Source of the DNA: Pocillopora damicornis | Lineage: Eukaryota | NCBI RefSeq assembly: GCF_003704095.1 | Contig: NW_020843886.1 | Location: 1 to 64,000, forward strand | Length of the DNA: 64,000 bases | Direction: 5' to 3' | In this document: one piece after another, positions 1 through 49,235 of the stretch | Layout: the number at the start of each line of letters is the position of its first letter | How positions within the stretch are numbered: the first letter of the stretch is position 1 | The notes under the pieces: model-generated | What the model saw: the letters and a program-made list of their open reading frames with translations, nothing else | What the model was told of the DNA's origin: nothing | Databases searched by the model: none | Made by a program: the position numbers and the translations under genes

Positions 1-754
1 GCCAAACTGCTGTCAAATGAAAACATACTGTACACAAGGTAAAGAATCAGAAGGCTGAATCCTAGGCTAAATGCTTGAGTTGTAATGCTGTCGAGTACCA
101 GGGACAGACCACGTCCATGATGGTCTTCTTGACAAAATATGGCTGAAGACACTGACTTAACCTATAAAAGAGGACTCGACATCAAAATGGTGTACATGTT
201 AGGGAAGAGATAAATGCTGTTTAGGATGTTTAGCTCTAAAAATAATCTTTATATAAATAGAAAGGATTTATTGACCCTTTGGACGACAAAGGCTGTACAT
301 ATGGTATATAAGGGCCAAGAGACAAGTCAAATCAGTGAAAGAAATAATTAAAAAATACAACATGACATGGTTATAAACCATAACTGTTTGAAGGCAGACC
401 CGTTAGCTATTTGCAAGACTCGACCCAGTACATTTAGACCAGGTTGTAAGTGTAGCCTGCCTACAACTCGGCGACGCGTCCTCCTGCTTCCACTCTTACT
501 CCAGATTTTCACCAAAAAATGCAGAAACGTAAACACTCTGCGTGGGTTGGCGGTTAAATTTTGTTCGACTGATCTAGAAGCGTTTAACATCCATAACAGG
601 TAGTACTTTTTAGTTAGTTCGAGCATCATAAGAATCATCGAGGCATCGAATTTACATAGAATTTACCATTGAGGCATCGAATTTTCTAATTTCGCTCGAA
701 ATAACGACTTACCAGTAGGCAGACAACAGCGATCGCAGAGAAAATGTTTCCCAT
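1..754 (-). CDS. TNFR-cluster receptor A, 5' part (signal peptide, CRD1-start remnant, putative TM); runs off the window edge
   Basis: Exon 1 754-713 MGNIFSAIAVVCLL|GTAAGT. Exon 2 starts at 161 after ttttatAG and reads VKSVSSAIFCQEDHHGRGLSLVLDSITTQAFSLGFSLLILYLVYSMFSFDSSL. Exon-1 size and phase, and the CQEDH motif, match receptor C (MEICQLRHYVFFCVL|VNQANAAQVCREDQH). Confidence 0.55.
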
Positions 755-6672: not shown

Positions 6673-9600
6673 TCACACATCAGTTAATTCTTTGGTGGCC
6701 TTTGCATCAAATATTGCTTTCAACCGATTAGCAACATCAGTTCTCCCAGCTTCTCTCCTCACCACATTAGCAAACTCCCAAACTGTCAGTTCTGGCCTTT
6801 CAGTTGCCAACCATTCAATCACTGCTTTTGATTTTTGATCCTGAAACCTTGCTTTTATTTTGAAGTAATTGGCACCATAAAAACGAGCAATTATCTCATA
6901 GGCCAGTTTTCCACCAATGGGTGTGTCTAAAAGTTCACAAATTGTTTCCAGTTCACTTGAGTCCAATAAGCTTCCTATTGGCTTAGAATCTGAAACACAG
7001 ATTGAACATGACAAAATATATCAGAGAATCCCTGTGTAAAGGTACTGTAATTAGACTATAACACTCAATATACTATTTAAATGATATATTCTTTTCTACT
7101 ACACACACCAAAAATTTTAAAAAAACTTTTTCCCCAAATGAATTAATTTCAATTCATGTTTGGGACAACTAAGGCCTTCAAATTACAAATGAACTTTACA
7201 GTCGGGTACTCTCACTGGAATTTTTACTTTTATAGCAGTAGCATTCAAATTCACTCAGCCCTCAATTTCTGCAAATGTCTTAAATGCATTTTTCCTGTAA
7301 AAATAATCCTCGAATTTTTACCTATTTAGTCCATTTATTTAGCATTTTTCAAACTTGTGAGAAGAGTTCAGATCCACTGTAGGCATGACAAGTATTAATA
7401 ATAATTATACCTGACTTCACCAACTGTTCTGCATTGTGGCAAGCGCTTGTACACAACTTTCCATCACCCTACGATGTAAACCACAATTGATATACATCCT
7501 AAATGGCTCATGCATAGATAATTATATCATGTATAAGCTATCAAAGTGAGTACAACTATACCCATGAAAGGTGAAACCTAAAAAAAGTATAGTTTTGAAG
7601 CAAAAATATTGCCATGCACCCTCACTAGTAGACGCTAATTACAGGCATCCAGACATCATGATAAAATAAACTGGAATTCAGAAACAAAATTAATGAATGG
7701 GTCAGACTGGCCCATTTTACAATTTGCTTGGCTCCTCTTTAACTTTATACCATTTTTTATTTTATCCCTATTGCACCATAAGGCTTGAACAACAAGAGCA
7801 TTATTTCACTTGTGTTTCTATGATACTTATAATTCCTTACTGCACCCCTGACTTACACAACCATTCTGGATAATAAAGGACTTACAGAGCCACATTTCTT
7901 TTATTGTAACTTCAGAACATTTCTGTTTCAAATGGGAGAGATTACCATATATTTTCTCTGTCCAACTGGAATAGAAAGTTAAAAATTAAAGAACTTCATG
8001 TTCACCTACAAGTGGACTGCCTGGGCACTAACTCATACATTCATTACCTCTAACAGTGGTTCACATAATTCAACTGCTGCTAATCCAGAATTATAATGAA
8101 CTTTGGTACTTTTCTTCTTATGTGTTCCCCCATCTGTTGGTAGTATGGTAAAAATTGTTGACTATACATTGAAAGTAATTCGTAATGCATTAAGGACATC
8201 CAAAAATCCCCCAAGTATAATATTAGTGATTGCTTGTAATTAGACAGCACCTAACTTTTGTTACAGAGGGCGAAATTTCTTTTCTCACAAAGTCATAATG
8301 AACATGTAAAGGAGATACTACACAACAACAGTTAATTGTGACAATTTTAGTGGATCAGATTTTGTCACATAAAAATCATACCTTAAATCTTCCCTAATAT
8401 ATTTATTTTGTCTCTGACAACTAGTACACCACATGTAAGATTCTTGACTGAGAATTACCTGGATCAACACAACTATGCATTGGTGACCGTGACTTGCAAA
8501 AGCATGTTAGGTAAATTCCACTCCCAATTACCAGAAGTAGTAGTGCCACAGTGGCTGCAATTGATATACAAGAGTTATTGCAATCCTTGTTTTTAGAAGC
8601 AAACCAACTACCAACCCCAGAATGGGTTATATTTTCTAATCTGTAACCCACATCGGCACTGGTATTAGTTAAGGCTACAGTGACTATGTGACTTGATGTA
8701 GTGGCAGCTGAACTCTGACTTGATTCAGTGGTAACCTGAGGTACAAATTTTGGGGTTGATTTAATATTGCATCTATTGACACTGCTGTGGAAAGAGCAGA
8801 TCATGCTTGATTGAGATCCCAACTTTTCTATACATTCACTCTCCACCACATCTCGATCATCATTGCAGCACTTGGAACATTTAAGACAATCTCCTTTGGA
8901 TTCATCATAATACCTGTTCAAAGGGAAGAGTAAGGAATAAAAAATTATCTTTTTTGGCTGACATATAGAGTAAAACATTAAATGTCAATGTCATCATCAT
9001 TCTTGTTATCATGTCAATGACAGAATTAAAAAAAACTAGAAGCATTGATTTTTCTAAAATTTTTGCCCAACATTTTAAATAAATGGCAATCTAGTAATGG
9101 ACAACCAACTAAGTGGCTCCACTTGCCCACCATTTACAGGTCAATTGGAATTTGAAATGTTGGTTTTTGCAGAGGGAGGAAAACTTAAGGACCCAGAGAA
9201 AAACCTGATGACTGGAGAAAACTCCACTGCACCACCCCTGTGCCATTCCTGCAAGGAAACATTAAATGCCTGAACAATGACAATTAATTTCTATCAGGCT
9301 AGTTTCACTAAAATTTCCTATACCAATAGGCAAATGCCAGGTATTTAAATGTAAATCAAAGCCAAACTAGGAAAATTCTGCAGTTAATCAGATTTTAAGT
9401 TGGAATTATAGTAATTCCAAGCACCCTTTGACACCCTCCCTCCCTTTCACCCCATGGCCACTTCAAGTACAGCTGTTACATGATGTACCTGTCTTTGCTG
9501 TAACATCTCTTTCCACATTCAATGTCTGCTTGACGTGAGCAGTTTTTCATCACCACCTGGTCCTTGGAGCAAGATGAACAAGGAATGCAGACAGATATGC

Positions 9601-9793
9601 TAAATTCATTGGAAAATGACTTTCCCAGTTGGCATGGAACACAGAACACTGTTGCATCAGGTGTTAATGGTTTTGAATTTCCACATTCTGGTGAGATAGT
9701 CTGGCCTGGAGGGCAAGCCTGACAGTCTATACACTGTGGTGGACCATCTGCATTTTCAACCCAGTGTTGGCTTTTCTTGCAAGGATTTGTAGG
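6673..9793 (-). CDS. TNFR-superfamily receptor B: EDAR/TROY-like CRDs, TM, C-terminal death domain
   Basis: Exons 9793-9489 (CKKSQH..CIDCQACPPG..ECG..CVPCQLGKSFS..CIPCSSC..NCS..DIECG), 8913-8459 (YYDESKGDCLKCSKCC, S/T-rich stalk, TM ISIAATVALLLLVIGSGIYLTCFC), 8133-8048, 7468-7411 and 6989-6673 (death domain ICELLDTP..YEIIARFYG..SKAVIEWL..LTVWEF..GRTDVANRL). All phases are compatible; the first exon is uncertain because of the gap at 9832-9930. Confidence 0.88.
9140..9240 (-). mobile_element. Degenerate SINE fragment in an intron of receptor B
   Basis: Reverse-complement similarity to the 3913-4066 SINE (GAGGAAAAC..CCAGAGAAAAACC..CACTGCACCACCCCTG). Confidence 0.55.
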
Positions 9794-14053: not shown

Positions 14054-14858
14054 ATAACAAAAGAAACCAACATAAAGAACCCAATGATTTTCAGTCGGCA
14101 AAACGTTTTTTAGAATCTTAGAGAGAGCTTCTCTTCCTACAACACGTTGAAGTGCTAACTGCTGCTAGTAGTTGGATTATGACAATCCACGAGAGGTACT
14201 TCCTGGTTAACAATCATATGATTTTAACCTCCCACAATCGCGTGTAAAACCCAGAAAGCACTAATCAATAAAGGTAACTTTCTGTATTCTTAGGTTCATC
14301 ATACGCCAACCGATGGCCTTGAGAATCAAAACTATTCAGGTACAAAACTTAAAATTTAATTCACAAGTCCAGTTGGAATTTTTGTGATACAAGATTACCC
14401 TATGGAGCTTTACCTAGGTCTTAATTACAAGTCAAGTAAGGTTCTGGTGTTTTGACTTGCCAAATATCAAGCACTCAGGTCAGGGAACAGAATAGCTCAA
14501 TTGTTATGTNNNNNNNNNNNNNNNNNNNNNNNNNNNNNNNNNNNNNNNNNNNNNNNNNNNNNNNNNNNNNNNNNNNNNNNNNNNNNNNNNNNNNNNNNNN
14601 NNNNNNNNNNNNNNNNNNNNNNNNNNNNNNNNNNNNNNNNNNNNNNNNNNNNNNNNNNNNNNNNNNNNNNNNNNNNNNNNNNNNNNNNNNNNNNNNNNNN
14701 NNNNNNNNNNNNNNNNNNNNNNNNNNNNNNNNNNNNNNNNNNNNNNNNNNNNNNNNNNNNNNNNNAGAAAGAAAGAAAAATAGATGGCAGGATAGTTGTG
14801 TTTATTTAAAAGAAATTGTTCACTGATCCTTTTCATTTCCCATTTCAAAGTTACGGGT

Positions 14859-15167
14859 ATGCCAAAACTGGACCGAGACGCCCTTCAAAGCTGTCACGTA
14901 GATCTTATTGCCAATATTGGGGACTTTACATCGTTATGTGCCTATCTTTATCAATACAATATCTTGACGGCCGATGATAAGGCATTTCTGCGAAGTTTTC
15001 CACGTCCATCAGATGGCATCGATCACTTGCTAATGATGATACCCAGAAAAGGGAATATTTTAGACATTTTCATACGTATCTTGCAGCAATCACGAGAAAA
15101 TCAAGAAGCTGCCAAACGTTTAGTGTTGAAACGTCTACAGTTACACAGAAAGACAGAGAGTAAATGA
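14859..15167 (+). CDS. CARD-domain protein or exon (RAIDD/caspase-2-type CARD motif), 102 aa
   Basis: MPKLDRDALQSCHVDLIANI..LCAYLYQYNILTADDKAFL..DGIDHLLMMIPRKGNILDIFIRILQQS shows the six-helix CARD pattern with LL..IPRKG..F..L. A splice acceptor lies at 14850. Confidence 0.8.
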   Translation: MPKLDRDALQSCHVDLIANIGDFTSLCAYLYQYNILTADDKAFLRSFPRPSDGIDHLLMMIPRKGNILDIFIRILQQSRENQEAAKRLVLKRLQLHRKTESK

Positions 15168-15687: not shown

Positions 15688-15796
15688 CAGGTTGAGTTCA
15701 GGTTGAGTTCAGGTTGAGTTCAGGTTGAGTTCAGGTTGAGTTCAGGTTGAGTTCAGGTTGAGTTCAGGTTGAGTTCAGGTTGAGTTCAGGTTGAGT
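15688..15796. repeat. 11-bp minisatellite (CAGGTTGAGTT) x about 10
   Basis: Directly visible; overlaps the candidate stop codon of receptor C. Confidence 0.95.
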
Positions 15797-18700
15797 ATAA
15801 AGCTGGCAACTGAATGATGCAGTCAGAAATTTCTTTCTCTTTTCCCTTTCCACTCTTTACAACAGTGATATCTGCGATACTTGTGACTTGGTTTCCTTAT
15901 GAAGGAAGAAAGTAATAGTTGTGATTACTGGGAAGAAAACATCAGTTCCCCTACAGGAACAAAGTTCCTTGCATTTTCAAGTAGTTTTTTACTTCAAAAG
16001 AATAATAACTGACAACTTTACGACTCAATCCAGCTATACTGACCTTCATCCATTTGAAGGCTACTAAAACCTAACACCTCTCAGTAAGTGTAAACAACTC
16101 ACCATTCATGGCATTTGCAATCGAGCTCTGATTCATACACCAGCTTGGATCCTACAATGAAACAAATGGAAAATTAGAACTCTTTCAGTTGTCATATCTC
16201 TCAATCCAAAAAAATCAGAAAAACCCTGTGTTGGCAGTAACTGTACTGCTGGTAAACTCTCATTGGTGTTGTGGATTAAATTTCACAACTTTCATTGACC
16301 CATTCATATCTTCAAATTATTAGTTTCTGGTTCTAAACACAAATATGACCCCAAGCAAGAAGAAGACTAACTATAGGTGATCAAATCCTCATTAAAATAG
16401 ACTACAACAGAGGCCATTGTGTCTCCTGCAGATTAATTCAGTGAAATTTAAAATAAATTTATATTTTGTGCTATAAAATGTGCTACGTAAAATGTACCTC
16501 CTTAATAGCAGTGCTTGCATACATCAAAGTTTGATTGGATGCCTGAGTCAAAATAATAGTAGCAAAGAAGCTGCTTTTCTTTTTAGATGCTGAGCTAAAT
16601 ACCAGATTGCATCTCGGAGTTGTACTGAAAGAGTTCTTCAGTGATGCATAGCTGATTTTCTAAAAAAAAAAGAGAACAAAATGCAAATGTCTTCAAAATC
16701 ATCAAGAGATAGCAAAACTTTTAGGGATCTGAAAAGAAAGTTAATTATCAAGTTCACAATTTTAAGATCTTCAGTGAAGCTTGAAAGTTTCCATTTTTCT
16801 CAGAATCTTGCTCTGTTGTTGCACGACACTCAAACAATGACTGCAAAATACCATTTGGTGACCACTCTTTAGCTTCCAGCCATCAATATCCTTCACACCA
16901 ATTTCTACATCCTCTTCATGAATTACAGAAAAATCAAGAGATTCAACTGATGACATGGGCTTTCCTCCTTCCTTTTTCTCCTCCCTCATAACATTCTGTG
17001 GAGCAAAGGTCACACAATTTTGTTAAAATTCATTACTTACAGAAATAGATCTAACAAAATTATATAACATAAGTAACCATGATTGGAAGTTGGGATTCTT
17101 TATGAACTAGACTGGCACAATTTAAAAATCAAATTACATATACTTGTAAATACCTTAAGAATCCTAGTTAAGACTTCAATTATGTACAAAAACAGATTGC
17201 CACAGCTGGGTAAGATGTCACAAGGTTTGAAACACCTGTCCTCTTACTGAACAATTGAAAAAAAATTTATATATGAAAGAGATCTTTTGGTCTCTTCGAT
17301 GCTGAAACGCAGGGAGAAATTCAATGCCCTTACTATTGTCAATTCAGTCCTATCTAAGGAGAAAATCTGTTTTTTATCCTCAAAAGCTTACCTCAAATGA
17401 CCACTCGCAGTCATCAAAGCAGTACAATCTCACAACAAGGTCTTCTCCAACTCTGGTGTCATTACAAAATGCCATGACCTTCATTCTCTTGAATACTGGT
17501 AAAGATTGCTCTTCACAGTGTCCAACCACTGCAAATGTTGCAAAATAATGTGTTTTAAAGCTAACATGGTTGTTTTTGGGGAGGAATTCTTTTATTCCAC
17601 ATGACTTACTACCCTTCACATAACTTACTACCCATTCATCATTTTTCAACTCCTTCAAAATGATTTTCCACTTATTTGGAGAAAGCACCATGTTTGCACC
17701 ATGAGGTATCTGAAGCTCAAGGGGTTCCAGCAACTGGTTCTTTGAAATAAAAATAAATGCTGGACTTAGTGGAAATTCATCATCCTCAAGAAATCCAGGT
17801 AAATCCAGCCCTTCTGGTGTGGCATGCAGTACCAAATCACGTGGCAAGTGTTGAAGAGTAGACCTGTTGTTATCAAGAGAAACAACCTCAACTCCTGTCT
17901 TTTCAAATACCATATGACCTGGGCTATGTTGTTTTGGACACTCCAACTCTGCCTCCTTACTACCTACGAAATAAAATATGCATATGCAAAAATACGCATA
18001 AAATTTGTATATCGTAAACACAAGGTAGCTTTTTCAGAAAAACAGTATGGGAAGACTCCATTTTCTAGTCCTTTCTACAAAACAAATAAAAAATAGAAAA
18101 CAAAAACAAATAAACAAACAAAAAGTGAAAAGAAGTGAGGTACTCTGTTTTTGTTTAAAACGCTAGGTGTAGTACTCTATACACAAGAGTTTTAAGCCTA
18201 TAGGCACTGAAAACATAAAGCAATGAATACCAATTAGAGATAATAAATGAATGCTTAACTTACCTGCAAGTGAAGAAGTTTTTCTAATTTCAGCACAGTC
18301 CTTCTTTTCCATTAGCTCACAATTGTTTTCTTCATTTGGAAATGGATACTGATAGTTGCCCTCCGATAATGGTACTGAAATGGCAACCCAAATCAGAAAG
18401 AAACATATGCTCAATACAATCAATGTTGTCACCTTGTCAAGTTCGATTGAGTTCACTTTATAGTTTTCTTGTTCTACAGTTTGCAGCTGCCCAAACTGTT
18501 CATTTAAGCCCAAAGATGGAATACGAGGCTTAATAGCGAGCCCCTGAGAGTTCTCTGAAGACGCCATTCCTTCCTTTATACAGTTCACGATACTTTGACT
18601 GTCGCTAAAACCACAACACCAGAAGCACTGTTCACAAGCTTTTGAGTGGTCGTTCAGATAAAACCCTGGCATGCACTCACCACAAATGGTATTTGATTTG

Positions 18701-20225
18701 GTGGAACAGTTGGCTAAAACCTTCTGACCAATCGAACAAATTTTGCAAGACTGTAGAACACCCTGCTGATCGACGAAGGTTTCTCCTAAGATCGGAAGTT
18801 CACACTTAGGTATCGCACCATCAGTTACAACACTTCCACATGGTTTGGTGAGGCCAAATTCGTCTGAACAAACAGGACAGGGTAAACAGATCTGTTTGCC
18901 ATCATGCTTTACAATTGTGATCTCATCATACCAACACTTTGCTAAACAGGGTTTTCTCTTGTGGTAGCTGCACGATTGTGTTCGAGGCATCCCTTGCATG
19001 AGACATTGTGGGACAACTACGTCCAAATCACCCAAACAACATCCTGAGCAAGGGAGACATTTGGACAAAGTTTGGTTCTGGTAATACCCATCTGGGCATG
19101 GCTTGCAACTACATTGAGTGTTTGAGATTTTAGTGCATCGCTTTATAGTTACTTCATCTGGACTACAGGTTGAACAGGGTTTACAACTCTCAGACGAGTA
19201 GGAATCAGAGTAGTAGTCCGAGGCACACTCCTCACACTCAACTTGGGTGCCGATGGTCCTCCTAGTTCCGCAAGGGATTGTAACCTCAGATCCTGGGGGG
19301 CATTTGATGCAATCTGTACAAGCGATATTACCATCTGGTAGTTCTACTGCATGTTGGTCTTCTCTGCAAACCTGAGCTGCATTGGCTTGATTGACCTATT
19401 GAGGAACACAAATTGGATCAAACAAAGGTTTCTCTAAGCTTAAATTTCATTTGATGTAACTTTTTTGTTTTTTGATATTCGCATTGCAGTTTCTTTTCGC
19501 TTGGAAGCATGTTAACAACATGAGTAACTATTGCATCCGTAGCCTGCAGAGCAGGCGTCTCACTAGTGTGAGCTAATGTTGTAAGCTCGCGATCGTTTAT
19601 CCGACCGGTTGTGTTTGACTTGGAGTTAGAGTTTCACTCCCCCACCCCCACCCCTCTCCGTATTTTTGACCGTCGACCGCCCCCTTAGTACAAATTTATT
19701 TCTCTCCCCAGCCTTCCGCTGCCATCAAAGATGGCGGCCATAATTTTCGTTAAGAAATTACTGAGCACTCTCTCGCCAAAATTACGCCTGATCTGCAGGC
19801 TATTACATCAGTGAAACACACCAAAGAATACGGTCATGAAAAGTTCATAGCCTCCAGTGCAGGTGTAATTTTGGCGAGTGAGTGCTCATCCGGATAGACG
19901 ATATATGTAACGTTAACTCGCCCGCACTAAAAGTACACATGGCTAGTGCATCTTGAAAACTTCAGCCTCAGTCTTAACCGAATTGGTACCGATCAAATTT
20001 GACGTCCTCTTGCCATTCAAGGCAACTTCTTTTTCTTTTGGGCCCCTCACACCTAAAATAAGCACGATAAACAATACATAACTAACCCATCTTAACTGTC
20101 TGTTTAGATCAAGAGGTTTTCACTTCCGCTGAACATCTCACCGTTGCAAGACATGAAATGATACAAGACAATAACCTTACCAAGACGCAGAAGAAAACAT
20201 AGTGCCTAAGTTGACAAATTTCCAT
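15786..20225 (-). CDS. TNFR-superfamily receptor C: signal peptide, two tandem EDAR-like CRD modules, TM, cytoplasmic ZU5 + UPA, no death domain
   Basis: Exons 20225-20181, 19395-18264 (open frame checked), 17963-17392 (ZU5: TGVEVV..PLSPAF..PLELQIPHGA..W; UPA start KRMKVMAF..LVVRLYCFDDCEWSFE), 16995-16852 (NVMREEKKEGGK), 16659-16498 and 16151-16081. An alternative terminal exon is possible at 15895-15786. Confidence 0.88.
19540..19802. mobile_element. MITE with TAGCCTGCAGA..CAGGCGT terminal inverted repeats in intron 1 of receptor C
   Basis: Left TAGCCTGCAGAGCAGGCGT, right ACGCCTGATCTGCAGGCTA; flanks TTGCATCCG and TTACATCAG resemble a degenerate TSD. Confidence 0.7.
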
Positions 20226-20646
20226 TTCTTTGACCTCAACGGCTACCTTGATTTTACAAATGCAGAAAATCAGTTGATTAGAAGAGACGCTGTTGACCCT
20301 CTACCAGTAACAAATATATCGACCAAAACCTACAAAAGTGGATATTTGTTTAAACGCCACTGGATGAATATGTTTCGACTGATTGCTAGGTCTCCCTTAT
20401 AAGATGGAAGGAGTTGAACCACTGAAAATTTGTTCTTCTTTGAGGAAGTCAGAATTTTGATTATACTATCCTTTCGTTTTCGAGGGGGTTTCCCCGACCT
20501 TTGTTTCATTCAGCCAATAAGGGAAAGGAAACGACACTTAGCCAATGAAAGGGGGCTTATATAAATAATACAAATTAAGCCTGCTTTCAGTTCCCCTTTT
20601 TCTAGGAACTGACTAGTTGAAGCAAGAAAAAACGAAAGTGCTGAAA
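20226..20646. promoter_or_regulatory. Bidirectional promoter C with NF-kB, IRF, CCAAT and TATA motifs
   Basis: CTTTCGTTTTC 20471-20481 lies next to GGGGTTTCCCC 20485-20495; two CCAAT boxes (near 20514 and 20542); TATATAAA near 20558. Confidence 0.65.
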
Positions 20647-23600
20647 ATGGATTCAGAGGACAGACAAAGCGAGGTAACAAAGGTCCAGTGATGTTAATAT
20701 CGGTTAAACTTTGTTTATGAAGTTTCATTTTCAGTTAAGATCAATTAAGAACCACTGAACTGCGTACTCATAAATAGGAGGAATGAAGCATTTGAAGGAC
20801 ACTTTCACTTCGAAACACTTCTGCACGGAAACTGACTCTAATCTCCCCTTGTTCAACACCTCTCATCCACCCCTTCTAACATAAAAGCCAGTTCATTCTC
20901 CTATCTGTACTATGACCCAGATTGTTCTGTCGTTATAGCCACTGCCTTGAATAAATCAGAGAATGCGGCATATATTTACACGCAGTGGTAAGACTGAGAG
21001 CATAAATGCAATCAAACTGACTTTCATTACAAAAAAAAAAAGAGGAAAAAGTGATTCAAAGTGCTTATTCTCTGACTTAGAGCAACGATGGAGCAAGGAA
21101 TGAAAGAGATGACGACCTTGACGATAGGAGCGAAGTTGTTCAAGATGAAATAACGCCAGACATCGGCGATTCTCCACAACCAGGCGCATCCAGTTTCAGT
21201 CCAACAGAATTTTGTGTCTGCCCTGGAGAAACAACCCTTTTACTTGATATAAATGAAGCCATCTGCCCCCTTTGTGGGAAACTCATCGACAAAACTGTAA
21301 AAGAAGCTACGACTTCAGCGGCTGATGAATCGGGCGCATCAGCAAATGGCCATGTTGACGCATTAATTTCAACTCTGGTACAAGGACTAGTCATTGTTCC
21401 ACCCGAAGCATCTCTCGAAGATGAAATTTTTGCTTCAACACAAGAAAACTGGAGTGTAGACACAGATCTTCCATGTGAGGAGGGACAAGGTGGAATCAAA
21501 ATTCCCGTTGAAAGTAAGTAACACAACACGCGTTGTGAGCCATTATTCACTTGATTTATTACTTTCTCGAAGAAATAAAGAATGCTATTTGCGTAACATT
21601 TCCGAGATTCAAAACACCATTAAACAAAATTAAAAGACTCCGAATACTATTCAATACACTACAATGGACACAAATCATCTACCTACTTTGCTAGCATTAC
21701 TATATGGCTAATCTAATAAAGATGTGAAAGTATAATAGCCTCTAATGCATTTATGGCGTAGTCACCTCCAGAAGCTAATAAGTCTAAACATTTACTGATG
21801 ATTAACTCGCAATTGAGAGTAAACGTCCTTAGAGTGGAGAGTAAAGTTTAAGATGGAAATAATAGCTGTATAGATAACTACAAAATAAAATTTATTTAAT
21901 AGTTCTCTATACTATTTGTGCCAAAAAAATGCCCCTCTAAATCTTGTTTTTTTGTTTGTATTTCACAAGTCAAATTTGACTTAAATCATACTCAGTAGCC
22001 TGAATAAAACACAGCTTAAACTTCCTAAGTAATCGTATAAATTCACACGAGCAGAATTAACACTCTTTTAAAATAGAAGAAAAGCAGTATCCCCGATGTA
22101 CAGTTTAACATCCAAACATCTACAGCTGCAAAGCCCTAATTCCACTTTGAGAAGGTAATAGCAGATGCTTAAGGGGGTTAAGTTGGTTGGTTGAATCAGG
22201 GAAATGCTTCAGCCTCCTCTTGCCTCCGAAATTATACTTAGTTTTTATGCAAGTTTTCAAACTTTTTTGGATTGATCCACACAAAGATCTAAAGAAAAGC
22301 TCCAAAACAGGAGAAATCTATACCAGCTTAATTGATATATCAAAACAACAACATAAACAACAATAATTCACAACACATTAAGACATTGTGTGACAATGCT
22401 GTGAGAGCTTAATAAGGAATTATGAAAACTTTTTGCTTCTATTGTCGTTGTTGATAAACTTGTTATTGAGTTACTTTAGTTCCGAAATAGAGAACGATGC
22501 TATCAATTATCACCTGTAAGATGCGACATTACAATTGTCAAGACCATTTCCTTATGATTGACAAATGTAGTCATGTACCTGTTGTATATAATGTAATCGC
22601 TTAATTGTTCTTTTAGGCATCTCACACCCATCAGTCCAAGTGCCATGTCCACCTCTCCTTCTGAAGTTCTTTGTGCTGAAACAAGATCATATAGATGTTA
22701 ATGAAATGTTATTTTCATTACATTTCATCGAATATTCAGAACAGGTATAGAAAACTGTTAATAAGACACTAACATAGTATAATTGGGCAAAGCCAAAAAA
22801 AATATCTCCATTGCAATCCCAGTGGACTCAAGGAGTCAGTCATCAGAGCCAGTAATTTTTGCTGCCAACTTCTTTAAATGTGAAGCTCACTGAATTATTG
22901 CCCTATAAGGTCAGCCCTCTTAACCCTTACCAGTAAATATGCTGCCAGGTTGATACCATCACTGCATTGTTGAATTTTCTGCCCGTCATTATTAACACTT
23001 GAAACCAATAATTATTTGATGAATGGAGAGATATTGTACTAACCATCAGCTCAATAACCTTACATATTTGACAAATTCTACCAGGAAATGCTCATTCTTT
23101 GATTTGAACTACATGTACTAAATCAACTTCAATGATTTTTCCCCTTTGCTTAGGGGAGGGTAACTTCATCAGTAAGACAGTTGGAGCAACACCTGGGAAT
23201 GAGATTTCAGGTTGTCCCACTTGGCAAGGAACATTCTACCCAAGCAGAGAGTAAGCATCTCCACACCATCAATGTAGACCAACAAATTACAGTTACGTTT
23301 CAATTGCTGGGACAATGTGAAAGAAAATTCTTACTGCATGGGGACACTTTTGAGGTAAAGCAACTATAGTAAAATATTCCATAAGAAAATGTTATGAGCA
23401 GGAAAAAGGACCACTCATTAAGTTGGGTGGTATCTTGATTTTAGGGATCTTGCAAACACTAGAAAAAGGGAAGTAAGTGAATAAAATATTACTGACAAGG
23501 GAAGGGGGCGGTTACCTTGGTTGGCTTAACACATATGAATCATTAATCTAGGATTTTATATACACTTTTTTGGTATATTCAAAATAATCTGTAAAACTAT

Positions 23601-30414: not shown

Positions 30415-33342
30415 TATTAAAGTAGAAACTCACAATTTAAGAGCTTTCTTTTCAGTAAATTTTGCATTTGTACCCTCTGGATGTGACTCAATGGTTGGTG
30501 ACATGAGCTATACACCATATGGTATTGTAACTCACTTTATCCAGTTTTGTATCATAATAGCGTTCAAGGAACGAAACACCCCAAATGCATCCTTGAGTGG
30601 TTTCAAAAATATCCTGAAAGAACTGCTGTTCTGCCATTTGCTCAGCAATCCAGAAACTTATACCATGAATGTAAGTTGGAGGAAAGAGACTGAATGGAAT
30701 AAACTCTTTTCCCAATGACAACCCATCCACCTAAAATATCAGTAACGAATACAAATTTTACAAAATCACTAGTTATAATAATTAAAAGGATTGTGGGTAC
30801 CAATCAAAGGTAACTTGTGTTGCCAATATTAGAAATTATTTTTTATACAACATGATTCTTTTACAGTATTATATAGCCTTTTTTGAATGAAAAAGAAAGA
30901 GGAAGCATAAAGCACATGTGACTCTTGTAGAATGAAAAATATGACACATGCACCTCACACAAAAATTCAACTGCTGTTGATTATGGTCATATCCTTAGAC
31001 CACAACTATGAAGAACTACAACCACTACCCTATTTCCCTTGACAGGCCAGAGATTAAGATGGCAAAGAATCAAAAGTCTCACACTGACCCTTAGTGCACA
31101 ACTGACAAGTTAATGTAAACACAATGCACACAGATTTTTATCAGAACTACAGCTTGAAACAAAAGACCAAAGAAATAAACATCACAGCAACAAAAGAAGT
31201 ACCATTTGGTATGACTTAGTCAAACACCAAAAAGATGAGTGGTAGTTACCCTATATGTCTTCCATATGGAAATTAGCTGAATCGTAGACAAACACTATCA
31301 GTTCCTTAGAAAAAGCATACATAGCAGGGCGTGAAATTAATTTTTTTTTTCTGATAGCCTCTTGGCTCCTAAATTCTTCAAAGTGGTAGCCAATTCAAAA
31401 GAAGTTGGTCGCTTAGGGTTAGACAAAGACAAACAAACCCTTTTTTTTTACGCTGTCATTGTTCTAGAAATTAAGTTAGGGAAAAGATCTTTAACGTGCT
31501 ACAAAGTGGACACTAGGATAGGTGATCGATCTTGATGCATGTGCTGCGTTTTAGAAACAAATTTAATGAGGAAGTTTGTCGCGGATTTATCTTTGCAAAT
31601 CTTTTTAATTTACTATATCTCTAGGTAAGGTTATGATGAAACATTCTAGTCGTCAATTTGGCGACTAATTTTCAGGATTTGGTTACCAAAGTAAAAACTT
31701 TAGTCGCATTGGCGCCTGTATTAGGCGCAATTTCACGCCCTGCATAGCTGTGTAATGTTAATTACACAAATTCCATTATTGACCAAAATTTTCATATGCC
31801 ATTAGAACAAGGGTGAATAAGAAGCCTTTTACATAAAAATGAATTTAGTCACTCATGAAAGTAATTTCATCTACAACTAGAGGTTTTGCATCCGACCTTG
31901 TTTTAAGGATAAGAATTTTTGAAACTACTGAACTCAACAATTTATAATAAATGGTTCTTACTTGTGTCTGAATCAAAACTATTCTTGAATCTGAATAACA
32001 TGTGTCAGGACAATTTTAATTCCTATACTGTAGATTATAAGTTTAAAAAATTTGCAAAATGGCTTGGAGGACTTACCCATGAGTCACTGACACAGGATTG
32101 AAAGGTCTTAGCTCAAGCCGTTTCCAGGAGTGACAGTTCTTGCATGGTATTTTTGGGCAACCAAATTGAATTTAATGTCTCGCACACTCACATGGGACAC
32201 TGGGCACAAGCAAACTGTTACAGATAACTGAAAATTACTTTAAAGAGGTTGAGCCCATAAGTGATTTGGTTGATATTATGACTTCAATACCAGTTATCAA
32301 AACATAACTTACTGTCCTCACACCATTCCACTTAAAGGGTACGGCGTCACTTCATCTTGACAACCACATCAAAAAATGCCATCCCACATTACATGGACAG
32401 AAGAACCTTCTGTGAGGGTTCAGGGATGATTTCCGTAAAGCTCTATACTTCATCATACACATAGTTCTTGAATAAAGAAAAACGGCGAAAACAATATAAT
32501 GACTTTGGAACCTGGGCTTTGTTTTAAAACAGTATTGGATTTTAAGGAAATCATTCCGAGGTTGACATCATAGAAGGTATTTTGATGGGGCAGGTCAAAT
32601 TGATTGGTTTCGTGATGACAGCAGGCGCTAAGGAAAATTCTCCAGAATTTAAGTCACCGGCCGTTCGCATCTTAACCTTCACAGTGCGTTGATTTATCGC
32701 TAAGAAATAGCACTCTCCTGCGGTAAGTAAGGAGAATCTGGTGAGAAAACGATCAGCTAACCAGCTCATCAATACCAAATAATCTCCAAGTGACAGAGCT
32801 TCTTAAAAGCCGATCGAACTCATCATTTAAAAAAAAAGACAAACAAACAAATACCAACCAGCTCTCGCAGCTCGGTAAACAACCTGCCAAGAGTTTCCAA
32901 GCTCCCTTCTTGGATTGTCTAAGGGCGTTCCTCCCTGACACTGACAGAGGCTTACACAGATATCGCCTTTGAACTGTTCCACGTGGTGCGCGGCGCTTGC
33001 AGAGAACCGCTCACCAGATCTCTCGATTTGGCAATGTTTGATTTGCCGCCAGTGAGTGGAAAATTAAAGATCACCCGATCAAACGTTCTAGAGCCAAATT
33101 TTTGACGAAGATCTACTGCATCTACCTCGTGCATGATCTCAACGCTTTCAAAAGAGGACAGTTTCTCGATGCTTTCCACAGCGAAGTCGTTAGTCACCAA
33201 GGCTGCGCGCGACTCAAACGATGTCCCAACGATTTTCACACGTCTTTGATAACGCTGACGCCAAACAAACTGTGGATGAAAAGTTACCATCTCCGACTAC
33301 TAGCACATTATAAGAATGTGATTTTGGGTCAAGTAACGCCAT
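30415..33342 (-). pseudogene. FDXACB1: FDXACB1 pseudogene (duplicate of 44986-49073)
   Basis: The exon 1 copy (33342 to about 32858) has frameshifts. The terminal FDX-ACB exon copy (30731-30415) is frameshifted (..KVSYNTIWCIAHVTNH*). No counterpart of exons 2-3 is visible. Confidence 0.85.
31325..31742. mobile_element. Non-autonomous hAT-like element with a 5-bp TSD (hAT5-type)
   Basis: 14-bp TIR CAGGGCGTGAAATT / AATTTCACGCCCTG flanked by the direct repeat CATAG. Confidence 0.8.
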
Positions 33343-33478
33343 AGTCGTTAATAAATCGGAAACACAGAGCGTTGAAATCTGAAGCTCAAGAGTACGCTAC
33401 TTAGTTTGCGCGCTCGAACGTGGTTTGTTATTGACGTGGTTTAAGCATCACCAAATAAGAGTCTAGCTTTCTATTAAT

Positions 33479-33645
33479 ATGGCAGTGATGGTTGCGTACA
33501 TGGGCGGCTGTGAATTCTTCTCACAAAGGACAGCAAGGTAGAATAGGAATAATAGGTGGATGTCAGGAGTTTAATGAAGATAATCATAGTCCTGGGCTTC
33601 AGAGATTACTGATTTTGCGTCATTATTGGGAACCTCTTTCAAAAT
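33479..33645 (+). pseudogene. NAXD: NAXD exon 1 and intron 1 remnant
   Basis: Matches 49236-49266 joined directly to 49485-49625 ([15 protein letters not shown]); it has an internal deletion and has lost the GTAAGT donor. Confidence 0.8.
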
Positions 33646-33649
33646 CCTG

Positions 33650-33879
33650 AGCCTATCAACCAATGCAACATCTTGACTGCTAATGATAAGGCATTTCTGA
33701 GAAGTTTTTCTCGCTCATTAGAGGGCATTGATGGATTGCTCATGATAATACCCAGAAAAGGGAATATTCTAGACATTTTCATAGGTATTTTGAAGCAAAA
33801 ACGAGAAAACCAAGAGGCTACTAAACGTCTCGTGTTGAAACGTTTTCAGTTACATGGAAGACAGAGAGTAAATAAGTAA
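33650..33879 (+). pseudogene. 5'-truncated copy of the CARD exon
   Basis: ILTANDKAFLRSFSRSLEGIDGLLMIIPRKGNILDIF matches 14940-15167; the N-terminal helices and the acceptor are missing. Confidence 0.8.
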
Positions 33880-34764
33880 ATGTGAATGTAACCATATTGA
33901 TGTAATTTCAGTTATGGTTAATTACGTCATGCTCGCCAAACAAGAACTCCGTTCTTGAGAATGGATCAGAATAAACATAACAACCTAAAATTACTTTATA
34001 GTGTGAATGAATGGACTCTTCATTGTTCGTTTCACCACTTAGCACAATACTTTATCACACTTGCTTTTGTGGTTATCAAACATTACTCATACAAGAGATC
34101 ACTCCCACTTAATCTATACAATCATTAGCTTTAGATAGATAACGTACAATATCCTATGTTCAGAACCTAATAGGCCATACCCTTTACACTTTTGATGGCA
34201 AACTACTACTACTTAAATATACTTAGTAGGAGTTGAGTTTCAGATCTAAAAGTCTAAGAGTCTCACACTCAATTTTCTGTGTAAAAACTAATCATGTTCA
34301 CTTTTCAAAAACACTCTTTCATCTAATTTCTTAGTTTAAACTAGTTGCACGGTCAAATAGAGACAATATGACACTCAGTGTAATACATCTAGTTCATGAT
34401 GGCTAAAGTTCAAGTTTTGAAACCCATAATTTCTGAAGACCATCAGGTTTAATATGAAGCTTTTTAACTGAACAATACAGTCAGTGAAGTCTTGCTCTTT
34501 TCCCTTTCTACTGTTGCAACAGTGATATCTGCTATATTTGTGACTTGATTTCCTTCTGGAAAAAGGAAGAAAGTAGCAACATGGCCAACATATAAAGACT
34601 TTCTGCATCAGTTAAACTAATATTGTTATCTTTTCTCTATGGAACAAATTCTCTGAAAGTAATTTTTACTCTTAAGTGGATTACTTGGAGGGAAACATTA
34701 ATTCTCCTCAGGCACATAACTCTCTGCACTCTAAGTAGTTTTCAATTCAAAAAGAATGTTCAAC

Positions 34765-35730
34765 AACTATTTACCAAAGTGGAGGTGGTTAGTGGTAGAT
34801 ATTTACTGAGCCACAAAACAATAATGCGAATACATGTATCCACTGCAAGCCACTGACTGAGATGAATAGTTGTTTTAGTGTATACTAAAACACTGTGAAC
34901 ATATAACAATAAATTGTTTTAACTTATTTATTCCTGCAACAATTACGATATTTTCAGGGACAAATCCTGAGCATATTGCTCGGAGGTGAATAACGATGGA
35001 TTTGTGCACTTTGAGTCACCAATCAGCATGCCCCTTCAACACTATCTACTGTTTTAGTTTCCGTATATGCTAATTATTGATACTTTTATTAAAACTCATG
35101 AGGCCAACAGCCTATCAAAACATTACTAAAACATCTTGTGTATGACCCTTGATACCTGGTAATCTATGACCATTCTGAAAAGTCTGGTGGTGGCTTTCAT
35201 TTCAGTCCCAGAGGAGTGCAGGGCTGAATGTGCAAGCAATTCCAATTATTGCTTATTCTGAATTGAAACTATCTTTATATAAAGGTCACCAGTGATCTTT
35301 ATATAAAGCTGTGAACATTGTCCACTTTGACTTTGAATCTTCTTTCCTCAAAGTTGGCGTCCTTATTTCTTCTTGAACTTTGCCACTTGCCAAATATTTT
35401 CTTAAGCCACTTTGTGGCATACCATGTAGATTTTGGAATAGAACTATCCAAGAACTCGCTCCCTTCCTCAGCACTTTTTGGTTTTGGGTGGCATTTCAAA
35501 TAAAAACTCTCTGAACCTTTAACAGCAGCTGAACATGGGGCACTTTCCCTTTCTAAATGTAATTAACCCTTAATACATCACGTCACGTTTATCTAAATCT
35601 CTTGAGAGGCATGGGTTTTGAAGCTGTTAAAAAAACTTGCAGCACGTATTTTATCGGCTCTAAAAACATTAGGCTCTGCCTTGTGTTTTTAAACCCAATA
35701 AAACACTGCTGCTCATTTTTAAAACATTAC
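34765..35730 (-). mobile_element. Degenerate Crypton-like (tyrosine-recombinase element) relic
   Basis: The fragment SSIPKSTWYATKWLKKIFGKWQ resembles the N-terminus of Crypton/DUF3504-associated proteins. An AACAACTATT..AAGTGGAGGTG..TAGTGGT.GATATTTAC end repeat is present, also at 38843-38891 on the reverse strand. The insertion is absent from the equivalent region of receptor C. Confidence 0.5.
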
Positions 35731-35757
35731 ATAAAGCCTAACTGACTTTCATCTATT

Positions 35758-38531
35758 TTACCCCTCAGTAAGTACAAAGAAGTCACCATTCACAGCATTT
35801 GGAAACATGCTCTGGTTTTCATAACGGATTGGATCCTACAATAAAATAAACAAATATTTAAAGCTTTATTCTAAGTTGGTATATCTCTTGATCCAAAAGA
35901 TCAGGAAAGCCCACTGATACTAATATTACACTGCTGGTAAACTCTCTTTGGTGTTGTGGATTTACTTTGACAATTTTAATCAATGCATCTATACCTTTAA
36001 GTTTAAATTATTAGTTTCTGGTGCTAAACACCAAATATGACTCTGGCAAGGAAAAAACTTTTAAAAAAATGACCAGATCCAAATTTAAATATACTAAAAT
36101 GAGACCACTGAGTCACCTGCAAATTCACATCTTGAAATTGATAATCATTTTGTGCCACGGAATGTACCACCTAAAATGTACAGTCACCTACCTTCTTAAT
36201 AGCAGTGATTGCATACACTACAGTTTGAGAGGATGCCTGAGTCAAAACAATGGTGGAAAAAAAGCCGTTTTTCTTTTCACTGGTTGCAGGGCTAAATACC
36301 AGATTGCATCTGGGAGTTGTACTGAAAGAGTTCCTCACTGATGCATAGCTCATTTTCTAGATAAAGCAGAAAAAAATTTAAATATTTTCAAAATCACCCA
36401 GAGATACCAACACTTTCAGGGATCTGAGAAAATTCAATTACTAAGTGTAAAAAATTAAGATCTTTGAATCATCCTTTAAATTTTTCCTCTTTTCTAAATA
36501 ACTTGCACTGTTATTGCATAGTACTCAAACAGAGTCTGCAAAATACCATTGGGCAAGCATTATTTAGCTTCCAGCCATCAACATCCTTTACAACAATTTC
36601 CACATCTTCTCTGTGACTAAGAGAAAAATCAAGAGATTCCACTGATGACATAAACTTTCCTCCTTTCTTCTTCTCCTCCCTCAAAAGATTCTGTGGAGTC
36701 AAGTCAAACAAGTTTTATCAAATTTATTAACACAGAAATAGATCACACTGTTATAAAATAACTAACCATGACTGGAGGTAGGATGTTTGATGAACTAGAC
36801 CAGCACAAATTTAACATCAAAATTATAAATAACTGCAGTTACATGATAGATTCTAACTAGACTTCAGTTATGTGCAAAAAGCTTCTGAGAACTTGGTAAC
36901 ATGTCACATAAATTAAAATACCTAGCCTCTGATTATATCAAGATTTTTACTCCTAATAGAAGGAAATTTTATGACCCAAAGAGATCTTTTTGTAGATTGA
37001 AATAGAATAAATTGAATCATCATCTATTTATTGCTTAATATTAGGTGAGGATCTTTAAACTATATTAGTTATTCCCAAGAGCTTACCTCAAATGACCACT
37101 CACAATCATCAAAGCAATACAGCCTCACAACAAGGTCTTCTCCAACTCTGGTGTCATTACAAAATGCCATGACCTTCATTCTTTTGAGTACTGGTAAGGA
37201 CTGTTCTTCACAGTGTCCAACCACTGCAAATGTTGTAAAATGGTCTGTCTCAAAACTAACATGGTTGCTTTTGGGGAAGAATTCTTTTATTCCACTACCC
37301 TTCACATAGCTTACAACAACCCATTCATTGTTTTTCAACTCCTTCAAAATGATTTTCCACTTATTACAAGATAGCACCATGTTTGCACCATGAGGTATCT
37401 GAAGCTCAAGGGGTCCTGTTAACTTGCTCCTTGTGACAAGATAAAATGCTGGACTTAGTGGAAATTCACCATCCCTAAGTAATCCTGGTAAATTCAGCTT
37501 ATCTGATGTGGCATGTAACACCAAATCGCTTGGCACTTGTTGAAGGGTAGACTTATTACTGTCAAGGATAACAGCCTCAACCCCTGTCTTTTCAAACACC
37601 ACATGACCTGGGCCATATTGGTTTGGATGCTCCCACTCCACTTTCTTAATACCTAAGAAATAGATCCAAAAATAATGATAAATAATAATTAGTTATAAAA
37701 ATCTGCACATGTGCAACTTGAAGGTAGCTTTTTTATATGCACATTTGATCACCAGACTTCATATACTTATGAGGTGCTCTGCCTAAAACAAAAGCAAATA
37801 AGTTAATAAGATACAAAACAAAAAATTAGCGACAAAAGGTGGGCTAGCTACTATCAAAAACGCTTGTAACAATAATTTTGAGATACGAGTGCTGATCGCA
37901 AGTACTTGAGATATATAACAATATATACAAAGGGAAAATAATTAGTTATTTAACTTGCCTGAATGTGCGGATTGAGTGGTTTCTGTACTTTCAGAAGGGT
38001 CCTTCTTTTCCAATGATAAACTGTGTCCTTTTTCAAGATTATTTAAAAATGGGCATCGACCTTTACCTTTCAAAGTTTGCCCTTGTCGTTTAGAGATGTG
38101 ATACACAGTCAGGCCAACACATAGACCTATTATAGAGGCTGTGAAAGCATCAAGTTTGACATATTCCACCAGAGAGCTTTCTTGTTTTGTAGTTTGCAAT
38201 TGACTGTTTAGAGCAAAGGACGAAAAAAGCAGCTGAAGTCCAAGCCCACTAAAAGACTCTTTCAACATCATTACCTCTTTGATACAGTCCATAAAACTCT
38301 TTCTATCGTTATGGTTACAACACCAGAAGCATTCTTCACAAGTATTTGACTTGTCATTCAAATAAAATCCTGGTTCGCACCCACCACATATGGTATCCGA
38401 TTTGGTTGAGCAATTGGCGACAATGTTTTGGCCAATGGCACAGATTTTACATGACTCTAAGGTACCATGTTGATTAACAAATGTTTTCCCTACCATTGGA
38501 CGTTCACACTTGGGTATTGCACCATCAGTCA
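35758..38531 (-). CDS. TNFR-superfamily receptor D (paralog of C): CRDs, TM, ZU5 with HFT motif, UPA, no death domain; 5' part in the gap
   Basis: Exons <38531-37959 (GC donor), 37652-37087, 36690-36547, 36356-36192 and 35835-35758; a possible terminal exon lies near 34556-34465. Each exon is homologous to the corresponding exon of receptor C. Confidence 0.82.
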
Positions 38532-39183
38532 NNNNNNNNNNNNNNNNNNNNNNNNNNNNNNNNNNNNNNNNNNNNNNNNNNNNNNNNNNNNNNNNNNNNN
38601 NNNNNNNNNNNNNNNNNNNNNNNNNNNNNNNGGCTCACCAGCACAAGAAATGGATGCCTACGTTTTTTCTTTCCGATAAAACGCCAGTGTTACGCCGCAA
38701 AATGTAACAATTGTCGCAAAATGTAATCTTTTTAAATACTTTTTGGTACATTGACATGAAAAAACTACCTTTTTTTAGTTTCTGTGTGGTACATATAAAA
38801 TATATTATGAAAGTAATGGAGAATTACCGCGACGCTTGGCGGCACGGTAAATATCCACCGCTATTCATCTCCACTTCAGTGAATAATTGTTGCATAGTAT
38901 TTGGCCAGGTTGTTTAAATGACAATTTGCAGGTACTCACTTAACGTCCTGCGATTACAATTTAATTTGGGTACCAGTAAGATTGTTTCTTCCTTAGCCGG
39001 AAATAAATCAGGTGACAATCAAGGGCTAGACCCTAGTCCTGAAGTCACCACCTTTCAATGGAGTATTGTTATTCAATTGAAACTTTCAAATTTCTGACTG
39101 TCGTGCCAGCTTATTTTCAGATTTCTATGATAACATAGAGTAATTTTTTGAAAATTTTCTATTTGTTTTATCCCCTAATATAG

Positions 39184-40053
39184 GGCAGAGTAGCTTCGAT
39201 TGTAAGCCAGCTACAACGAGACCAATTCTCCAGTATACAAGTTGTTCCATTTGGTAATGAGTACTCCCCCCAACAAGAAAATAGACATTTTCATCTTCTG
39301 AACTTGGAAAATGAAATAATAATAAAATTCGAGTTGCGGAGGGAAGCACAGGGAAGATTCCGACTGCAGGAGGAGCAGAGACCTTTCCAGGTGTGTTAGT
39401 TAAACATGAAAACAACTAGGTGTTCCATAAAGAAAAAAAACACTTAAATCAACTCTAAAATTTTGAACAAAAATATGCTTTTAACTCCATGGAATTGTTT
39501 CTTTTCGTCTGTTGATTTGGCATTCTTTTTCACTCTTTAAACAGGTTCCATTGGTTCACATTATGTCCTTGAGCCAGAACAGAATTCCTAGTCCTCTTGT
39601 GCAGGTACATGTGGAATCTCTTTGTGAACCTGGAGAACTTTGCCAGGACCACTTGAGAATGACACTGGCGTACGGAAGAACTACTCAACGCATGTTGATA
39701 CCAATATGGGTAAATGCTGTACATTTCTGCTTACAGTAATGTAATTAAAATCAATTCAGTTCACAACATTCTCTTGCTGACTGCAGAAATTTACTCGAAA
39801 GTTTCATGATGAGTTATGCTAACCTTTAACATTAATATTCAGTCATGTTTTTGCTAACACACATTGGTTGATCTACGGCCTGTTTTGGTCCCTAAGGATA
39901 ATGCCATACAAATAAATTTTAAAGTTATGATGTAACACCCACTTCAAGAGTTTTAATAAACAGAATAAATGAAGATCATCACACAAATCAAACATCACTC
40001 ATCTCCATTTCCATACTTGCTTTCAGTCTGCCAGACCATCCGAATCCACTTAG
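39184..40053 (+). CDS. UPA-like adaptor D (3' exons; upstream exon appears disrupted, possible pseudogene)
   Basis: Exons 39184-39390 (GRVASIVSQLQRDQFSSIQVVPFGNE), 39545-39709 (QNRIPS..CEPGELCQDH..MLIPIW) and 40027-40053. The candidate exon-3 region near 39012-39139 has stops in all three frames. Confidence 0.7.
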
Positions 40054-49073: not shown

Positions 49074-49235
49074 AGCCGTTCATAAAGCGGAAACATAGAG
49101 CGTTGAGATCTAGAAGCTCAAGTGTGCGCCATTTTGTTTGCGCGGACTTGGATGGTTATTGCTGTGGTATAAGCATCACCAAAGTAGACTAATTGATATT
49201 AGTACCCAGCTGTTTCTCTGTCAATAACATTGCCC

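Follow-up and report, generated by a model that had tools for sequence, protein, structure and literature searches.

A TNF receptor-type ectodomain on a ZU5-UPA tail without a death domain in the coral Pocillopora damicornis

A locus of the stony coral Pocillopora damicornis raises the question of whether a receptor with a tumour necrosis factor receptor (TNFR)-type ectodomain can carry a cytoplasmic ZU5-UPA module and end without a death domain (DD), and, if so, how such a protein arose and what it may do. The locus lies in the first 64,000 nucleotides of contig NW_020843886.1 (assembly GCF_003704095.1), a stretch referred to here as the window. From the sequence alone, an original prediction had placed a chimeric receptor of this kind at 15786-20225, and the gene is referred to here as receptor C (or copy C). 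In vertebrate death receptors the DD directly follows the membrane, and to our knowledge no vertebrate death receptor or decoy receptor carries ZU5-UPA. Receptor C is confirmed here as a real, expressed gene that encodes a TNFR ectodomain built of cysteine-rich domains (CRDs), a transmembrane (TM) helix and ZU5-UPA, without a DD.

Gene structure and domains of receptor C

The gene consists of seven exons on the minus strand, with its ATG at 20225 and its stop codon at 15786-15788 (Table 1). The RNA evidence comprises assembled contigs from runs X1, X2, X5 and X9, which are coral or marine polyA libraries from three independent studies, and the exons are fixed by CT..AC joints in these contigs. 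Exons 1 and 2 are connected by the joint 19393->20179 (cut +2), present in all four runs; an exon 1 end at 20142, taken from a hand-made model, is ruled out by the RNA joints, which place the donor at 20180. Exon 2 is spanned by record 10 of X2 (18261-19396), and the joint between exons 5 and 6 (16150->16497) is seen in X5, with agreeing loose ends in X1 and X9. The joined coding sequence has 2214 nt (737 codons), a single terminal stop and GT-AG borders at all six introns. Record 16 of X5 (2,211 nt) spans exons 1, 2 and 3, and the CRD exon and the ZU5 exon therefore belong to one transcript rather than to two separate ones, as the original prediction required. At the 3' end, record 18 of X9 runs 15877->15381, while contigs of X1, X2 and X5 stop at 15690-15716.

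Several minor features of the transcripts are recorded here. An 11-nt microsatellite (15688-15793, ~9.6 units) begins at the stop codon, which lies inside its first unit, and in one run (X9) it is 88 nt shorter, a difference of 8 units. The transcripts of receptor C and of the convergent CARD-only gene seem to overlap at their 3' ends by several hundred bases. A minor in-frame splice within exon 2 (18375-18680, minus strand, 306 nt, donor GTGAGT) is seen in a single contig from one run, in which one flank of the joint has only 29 letters, and would delete the last CRD, the stalk and nearly the whole TM helix. Intron 5 is kept in a contig of X2 (16136-16659, minus strand), and read-through into intron 6 would give the end ...NGELFTLTERC, similar to isoform X3 in Stylophora (...NGELSVHIEG); neither adds a domain. 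In intron 1, the stretch 19560-19800 shows RNA contig depth raised several-fold, many loose ends and odd joints, and has the look of a repeat or mobile element.

Pfam and structure-sequence searches were run exon by exon, and the fold model was made on the Stylophora pistillata protein P0073 (LOC111318904, 740 aa), a stand-in that is collinear with all seven exons of receptor C. The encoded protein consists, in order, of a signal peptide, about six TNFR-type CRDs, a TM helix, a linker of ~50 residues, ZU5-UPA and a tail of 52 residues that is predicted to be disordered; every part listed in the original prediction is present, and the end points agree exactly. Exon 2 matches Pfam TNFR_c6 in five stretches (74.6 bits, cut-off 29.4; E 7.8e-21), and the ectodomain of 315 aa contains 37 Cys. 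By sequence, its best relatives among solved structures are p75NTR, OX40, OPG and CD40 (E about 1e-5), and a Foldseek search with the ectodomain of the P0073 model returns DcR3, CD40, TNFR2 and p75NTR. The N-terminus is hydrophobic and followed by ANA|AQ, and is conserved in the Desmophyllum protein P0074. There is one hydropathy peak, the highest in the protein, at residues 337-356, which corresponds to the TM helix (336-355 in the P0073 model), and a reading of the sequence together with hydropathy gives type-I topology. Receptor C is in these respects a member of the TNFR superfamily, and its ZU5 domain is followed by UPA.

Exon 3 scores 13.8 bits against Pfam ZU5, under the cut-off of 21, and receptor C's own short UPA and tail exons give no useful Pfam match. 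The ZU5 assignment is nevertheless secure, because relatives pass the cut-offs, the family profile matches UNC5B and the fold agrees. Relatives that are ~50% identical over the whole region reach 28.1 bits for ZU5, and P0002, P0004 and P0005 reach 29.3-40.5 bits for Pfam UPA; the stretch of P0002 and P0004 homologous to exon 4 falls inside this above-cut-off match. The family profile matches the cytoplasmic structure of UNC5B (3G5B) with E 6.3e-13. Foldseek with the tail of the P0073 model finds 3G5B (1e-13), the ZU5-ZU5-UPA-DD of ankyrin-B, and the FIIND of NLRP1 and CARD8. In this model ZU5 and UPA have pLDDT values mostly of 70-90 and the last 47 residues fall below 50; the UPA forms a full-length beta domain (556-688), and 300 columns align to 3G5B.

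ZU5-UPA proteins of the FIIND and PIDD type cleave themselves at the ZU5-UPA junction, and the corresponding position was compared in the coral family. Exon 3 of copy C reads H-Y-F-A-T-F there, giving Y-F-A; copy D reads H-F-T and the short-ectodomain form H-L-S. The family consensus D-H-L-S aligns to D-Q-L-G of UNC5B in a profile alignment. The H/S-F-S motif with its nucleophilic Ser is absent from this junction in copy C, in which Ser is replaced by Ala and His by Tyr. In CARD8 the substitution S297A abolishes cleavage, and Leu-677 of UNC5B is the counterpart of the essential Phe in the CARD8 SF/S motif (PMC3210808). Because Y-F-A replaces the cleavage residues, copy C should be incapable of self-cleavage and remain one chain.

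The missing death domain

The C-terminal DD of ZU5-UPA-DD supramodule proteins is not found in receptor C, which stops 52 residues past UPA. From this stop to the convergent CARD open reading frame (ORF) there are ~620 bp, in which minus-strand ORFs reach at most 39 aa. A six-frame scan of the whole 234.35-Mb assembly (4,393 contigs; the window is the start of contig C521) with the Death profile gave 150 hits, typically with the DD within one open exon, and none on the receptor C contig. A hidden Markov model (HMM) built from 20 DD exons of the same genome found nothing in the window (best E 0.64) and nothing in the Stylophora locus. The exon 7 tail shows no likeness to a DD profile, and no DD-like ORF lies downstream of paralog D. 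The ORF, Death-scan and HMM tests thus agree with the earlier statement that no DD exon lies between the UPA exons and the convergent CARD gene at C or at D. It should be qualified by a probable divergent DD exon within the window (6676-7020, minus strand), which belongs to the neighbouring receptor B, 9 kb off and past two genes. The comparison of EISDCIIQL in exon 7 with EVLEALCVKL is suggestive only, and exon 7 is not claimed here as a remnant of DD helix 1.

A DD could have been missed if an alternative 3' exon past the CARD gene encoded it or if it fell into an assembly gap; assembled RNA contigs lose rare isoforms, and the assembly has gaps at 14510-14765 and elsewhere. This is highly improbable. 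The stop codon lies within exon 7, no RNA joint leads out of this exon, and one contig passes from it into the 3' untranslated region (UTR). None of the three RefSeq isoforms of Stylophora LOC111318904 contains a DD, and two more retrieved Stylophora paralogs share the DD-less tail. Proteins of two Montipora species stop right after UPA, and one Desmophyllum protein has the same DD-less layout. The only DD signal in the window is that of receptor B.

The origin of the DD-less state is illuminated by a distant copy on contig C4113 of the same genome (L022), found by a genome search with the family profile. Its exons encode, in order, TNFR and TM, ZU5, two parts of UPA, a short 'DPS...' stretch and Death, and three of the domains score above the Pfam cut-offs (TNFR_c6 36.5, ZU5 38.1 and Death 30.6 bits). 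It shares with receptor C the ectodomain type, the domain order, the exon boundaries and the splice phase at every junction. The phase-1 'DPS...' exon (L022 2922-2961) is homologous to exon 6 of receptor C, and exon 7 of receptor C, with its 36 codons, holds exactly the place of the DD exon in the C4113 gene. The two types differ in the terminal Death exon and in their ZU5 exons, which are only ~30% identical. TNFR_c6, ZU5, UPA and Death open frames occur on one strand and in the same order in two other public assemblies (L026 and L027). Exons of the DD-bearing gene, used as queries in a large protein search, brought up no full-length TNFR-ZU5-UPA-DD protein among annotated entries. In the whole-library search with exon 3, the ZU5 type of the C4113 gene was the sole one recovered outside the DD-less family.

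A maximum likelihood tree of the ZU5 region was constructed from the DD-less genes, the DD-bearing genes and nine further ZU5 exons from the same genome. All genes without a DD fall into one clade (100/100), which sits on a long stem and joins the DD-bearing genes (91/93), separate from the nine further exons. Among the remaining ZU5 loci, at least five are followed, 1-5 kb further on, by a Death exon. Given a DD-bearing sister with identical phases and one derived DD-less clade, the loss of the DD is most likely secondary and not part of the original fusion. The ancestral form was most likely a TNFR-ZU5-UPA-DD receptor, whose DD exon would have disappeared in a single later event on the stem of the family, with a short tail exon replacing it. 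The original claim of a fusion therefore holds for the joining of TNFR and ZU5-UPA without a DD in one transcript, and most likely fails in regarding the DD-less state as that of the original fusion. The tree pairs copy C with Stylophora LOC111337437 and copy D with the two other Stylophora genes, and the C/D duplication is therefore older than the split of Pocillopora and Stylophora.

A search with exon 3 against 1.84 billion representative proteins recovered 22 relatives, and every one with a named organism is from a stony coral. The DD-less architecture is found in both main stony-coral lineages, and the family was found only in stony corals; databases name these proteins 'uncharacterized'. 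In comparison with Stylophora P0073, the ratio of nonsynonymous to synonymous substitution rates (dN/dS) is 0.24 for the ZU5 exon (dN 0.11), 0.27 for exon 5, 0.25 for the ectodomain (dN 0.24) and 0.60 for the linker. In dN the ZU5 exon reaches half the value of the ectodomain. Conservation is highest in ZU5-UPA, and the substitution ratios indicate that this module is under purifying selection (dN/dS about 0.24). Family members of Pocillopora and Acropora almost without an ectodomain retain the TM helix and ZU5-UPA, and three Stylophora paralogs share a conserved tail motif (...QVT...DCIIQL). Against P0073, the ectodomain exon has roughly double the dS (0.96) of the ZU5/UPA exons (0.27-0.45); P0073 pairs with copy D and not with C, so paralogy could contribute, as could gene conversion among paralogs or distinct histories of the two halves.

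Neighbouring genes and paralogs

Receptor C lies between a convergent CARD-only gene and a head-to-head orphan gene, in a window that also holds receptors A and B and paralog D (Table 1). The RNA contig depth of the CARD-only gene is above that of receptor C, and its homologs (99-136 aa, 70-97% identity) carry CARD. The copy beside paralog D (33613-33876, plus strand) has lost its N-terminal third, and the syntenic Stylophora copy (L021 16026-16331, minus strand) is a pseudogene with stops and a frameshift.

The orphan partner has a GT..AG joint 20671->21079 in all four runs, contigs traverse both first exons, and it has a common promoter region with receptor C. Copies C and D, and likewise the Stylophora gene, each have an orphan gene of this kind in head-to-head orientation, and a relative lies near the C4113 gene. 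The suggestion that the orphan partner is UPA-like was not borne out by hhalign, which gave a probability <1% for its two exons against the family profile, in a single-sequence test that is insensitive. A gene head-to-head with copy A resembles the orphan by eye in its acidic N-terminus and its Cys motif, yet gave no sequence match.

Table 1. Positions of receptor C, of its neighbours in the window and of the related DD-bearing gene
Feature	Position	Strand	Description	Support or remarks
Receptor C, exon 1	20225-20181	-	ATG and 15 codons of signal peptide, MEICQLRHYVFFCVL	Donor GT at 20180
Receptor C, exon 2	19395-18264	-	End of signal peptide, CRD ectodomain, TM helix (18373-18432), juxtamembrane linker	Closes in phase 1
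Receptor C, exon 3	17963-17392	-	ZU5 and initial UPA strands	RNA joints 17960->18261 and 16995->17392
Receptor C, exon 4	16995-16852	-	Middle of UPA, 48 codons	RNA joint 16659->16852 in 4/4 runs
Receptor C, exon 5	16659-16498	-	End of UPA, 54 codons, ...YASTAIKE	
Receptor C, exon 6	16151-16103	-	Short linker exon, DPSWCMNQSSIANAMN	Phase-1 end; RNA joint 15894->16102 (X1, X5, X9)
Receptor C, exon 7 (coding part)	15895-15786	-	36-codon tail, GNQVTSIADITVV...DCIIQLPALYST	Stop TGA 15786-15788
Receptor C, 3' UTR	15785-15381	-	Contains 11-nt microsatellite	Overlaps 3' end of convergent CARD-only transcript
CARD-only gene	14859..15167	+	Convergent, single exon, 102 aa	Pfam CARD 27.4 bits; contiguous RNA contig
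Orphan partner gene (first exons)	20179..21518	+	Head-to-head with receptor C	Intron 20672-21078
Paralog D	34459..39610	-	Same DD-less architecture	Self-comparison, tblastn; assembly gap 38532-38631
Receptor B	6676-7020, 8424-8984, 9479-9793	-	CRD exons, TM stretch, probable DD exon	Pfam 40.6 bits (CRD exons)
Receptor A	1-754	-	5' exons of a short-ectodomain family member	83-93% identity to P0004; runs off contig start
DD-bearing gene (L022)	G000:C4113:1-4579	+	TNFR-ZU5-UPA-DD	Contig begins inside CRD exon, 5' end missing

Paralog D is matched at 100% by GenBank pdam_00018690 (P0134), a partial and mis-spliced record. Its last exon (34459-34562, minus strand) matches the Stylophora tail in two different frames, which puts the DCI[IV]QL motif out of frame; the break is either a frameshift or an assembly error. 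The ZU5-UPA exons of receptor A were not found anywhere in the assembly.

Receptor B is probably a TNFR-DD gene with a divergent DD. No ZU5 was found between its exons, and Pfam finds nothing in the putative DD exon. Of 30 protein-atlas neighbours of this exon, however, 24 belong to Death clusters, hhalign aligns it in register (E 4e-4), and the AlphaFold2 model is a helical bundle (pLDDT 79.5); the ten best Foldseek matches are death domains, yet their E-values are weak (>=0.57).

Elsewhere in the window, genes for BMT5-like rRNA methyltransferases (48552-49079 and 32355-33396, minus strand; 60494-61561, plus strand) have been duplicated with the cluster. One copy (33217-33396, minus strand) begins ~220-280 bp away from the oppositely oriented CARD ORF that accompanies D, and the far end of the window contains a cadherin exon.

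Related systems and possible mode of action

Receptor C resembles UNC5A-D in being a single-pass type-I receptor with cytoplasmic ZU5-UPA; UNC5B is its best profile and fold match and shares with copy C the lack of a Ser where self-cleavage would occur. UNC5 differs in its ectodomain, composed of Ig and thrombospondin repeats instead of TNFR CRDs, and in the DD that closes its supramodule and is absent from receptor C. NLRP1 and CARD8 likewise have ZU5-UPA without a following DD, in their FIIND (target TM-scores 0.58-0.62), and a CARD is encoded next to receptor C. NLRP1 and CARD8, however, reside in the cytosol, self-cleave at SF/S and have their CARD in the same chain. Receptor C would be membrane-bound and uncut, and the adjacent CARD belongs to a gene of its own, the counterparts of which beside D and at the Stylophora locus have decayed. 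PIDD1 and UNC5CL employ ZU5-UPA in death or NF-kB signalling, and their H-F-S site corresponds to the coral consensus H-L-S, but they end in a DD, self-cleave and have no TNFR ectodomain. TNFR1, Fas, p75NTR, DR6 and TRAIL-R3/R4 have a TNFR-type ectodomain, and among them too DD-less and DD-bearing paralogs coexist. In line with the original prediction, no vertebrate counterpart of TNFR joined to ZU5-UPA turned up in the papers or structures searched.

The explanation we favor, with a probability of roughly 55%, is that receptor C is a derived, DD-less TNFR-ZU5-UPA receptor whose tail serves as an intact docking platform for a partner in trans. The ectodomain would bind a TNF-family ligand, leading to clustering of the receptor; a preprint lists nine candidate TNF-family ligands in P. 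damicornis (10.1101/2024.07.27.603686). The clustered ZU5-UPA modules of copy C, being presumably unable to cut themselves, would form an intact platform, which might recruit a cytoplasmic partner in trans instead of signalling through a DD of its own. Output through such a partner is plausible. The product of the head-to-head orphan gene may be considered the first candidate, and the second would be the DD of a DD-bearing paralog, binding to the site that the cis DD occupies in UNC5B. For the CARD-only protein, a complex prediction with ZU5-UPA of P0073 (398-700) gave a score of 0.00, which speaks neither for nor against binding.

Several points weigh against this explanation. The counterparts of the CARD neighbour next to copy D and at the Stylophora locus are degenerate, the insensitive single-sequence hhalign comparison gave no UPA-like signal in the orphan partner, and no conserved TRAF-type motif was found on reading of the sequence. 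A TRAF-type motif seen by eye in the linker (PNEE) was dropped, since it is not conserved in Stylophora. The transcript of the C4113 gene is predicted from exons of compatible phase and from their conservation across three genomes. Finally, a DD-less paralog of a death receptor could act simply as a brake on its DD-bearing relatives.

This last point is the main rival. Through shared ligands or mixed oligomers with the C4113 gene product or receptor B, receptor C would lower death signalling in a dominant-negative manner, and its ZU5-UPA would be retained for no other purpose than folding, trafficking or association with relatives. A DD-bearing sister gene is present in the same genome, a probable TNFR-DD gene adjoins, the ectodomain is itself under purifying selection (dN/dS 0.25), and vertebrate decoy receptors provide a precedent, as DD-truncated TRAIL-R4 lowers death signalling. 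However, decoy receptors usually shed the cytoplasmic part, while in the coral family ZU5-UPA is the best-conserved region. The members almost without an ectodomain keep it too, and cannot be ligand decoys because the ectodomain is nearly absent. The low identity between the ZU5 exons of the two types also speaks against a brake. The dN/dS values, the short-ectodomain members and the conserved tail motif weigh against a mere decoy, and we regard a brake as possible but rather unlikely. A role as a membrane-cytoskeleton anchor, in which ZU5 would attach to spectrin-like or other structural proteins and link an external cue to the cell cortex, is improbable. The model does match ZU5-UPA structures of ankyrin-B and ankyrin-G, spectrin complexes among them, but UNC5B is by far the better match, the second ZU5 that ankyrins use is absent, and the neighbourhood is rich in immune-type genes (CARD, TNFR and DD).

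Returning to the trans-docking platform, a more specific form of it is that the DD-less receptors and their head-to-head orphans constitute a new two-gene signalling cassette of corals, with the exposed ZU5-UPA as the docking site. After loss of the DD, ZU5-UPA might have come to recruit the orphan as a new output; alternatively, it might capture and silence the DDs of paralogs, which would amount to UNC5 autoinhibition acting between molecules. The cassette is offered tentatively, as a doubtful proposal.

A full-text literature search for ZU5 together with TNFR found no paper describing the combination, and neither a review of TNFR evolution nor a recent survey of TNFRs in P. damicornis mentions ZU5 or UPA. 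Heat tolerance in corals has been linked to TNFR expression (PMC4979521). One genome contains a TNFR-ZU5-UPA-DD gene, DD-less genes with and without an ectodomain, and copies that differ at the self-cleavage site, and thus provides a natural comparison in which the role of the tail can be tested with chimeras and add-back constructs. Receptor C unites in a single protein the TNF receptors and the ZU5-UPA module of UNC5, PIDD and FIIND proteins, which in vertebrates belong to signalling worlds apart.

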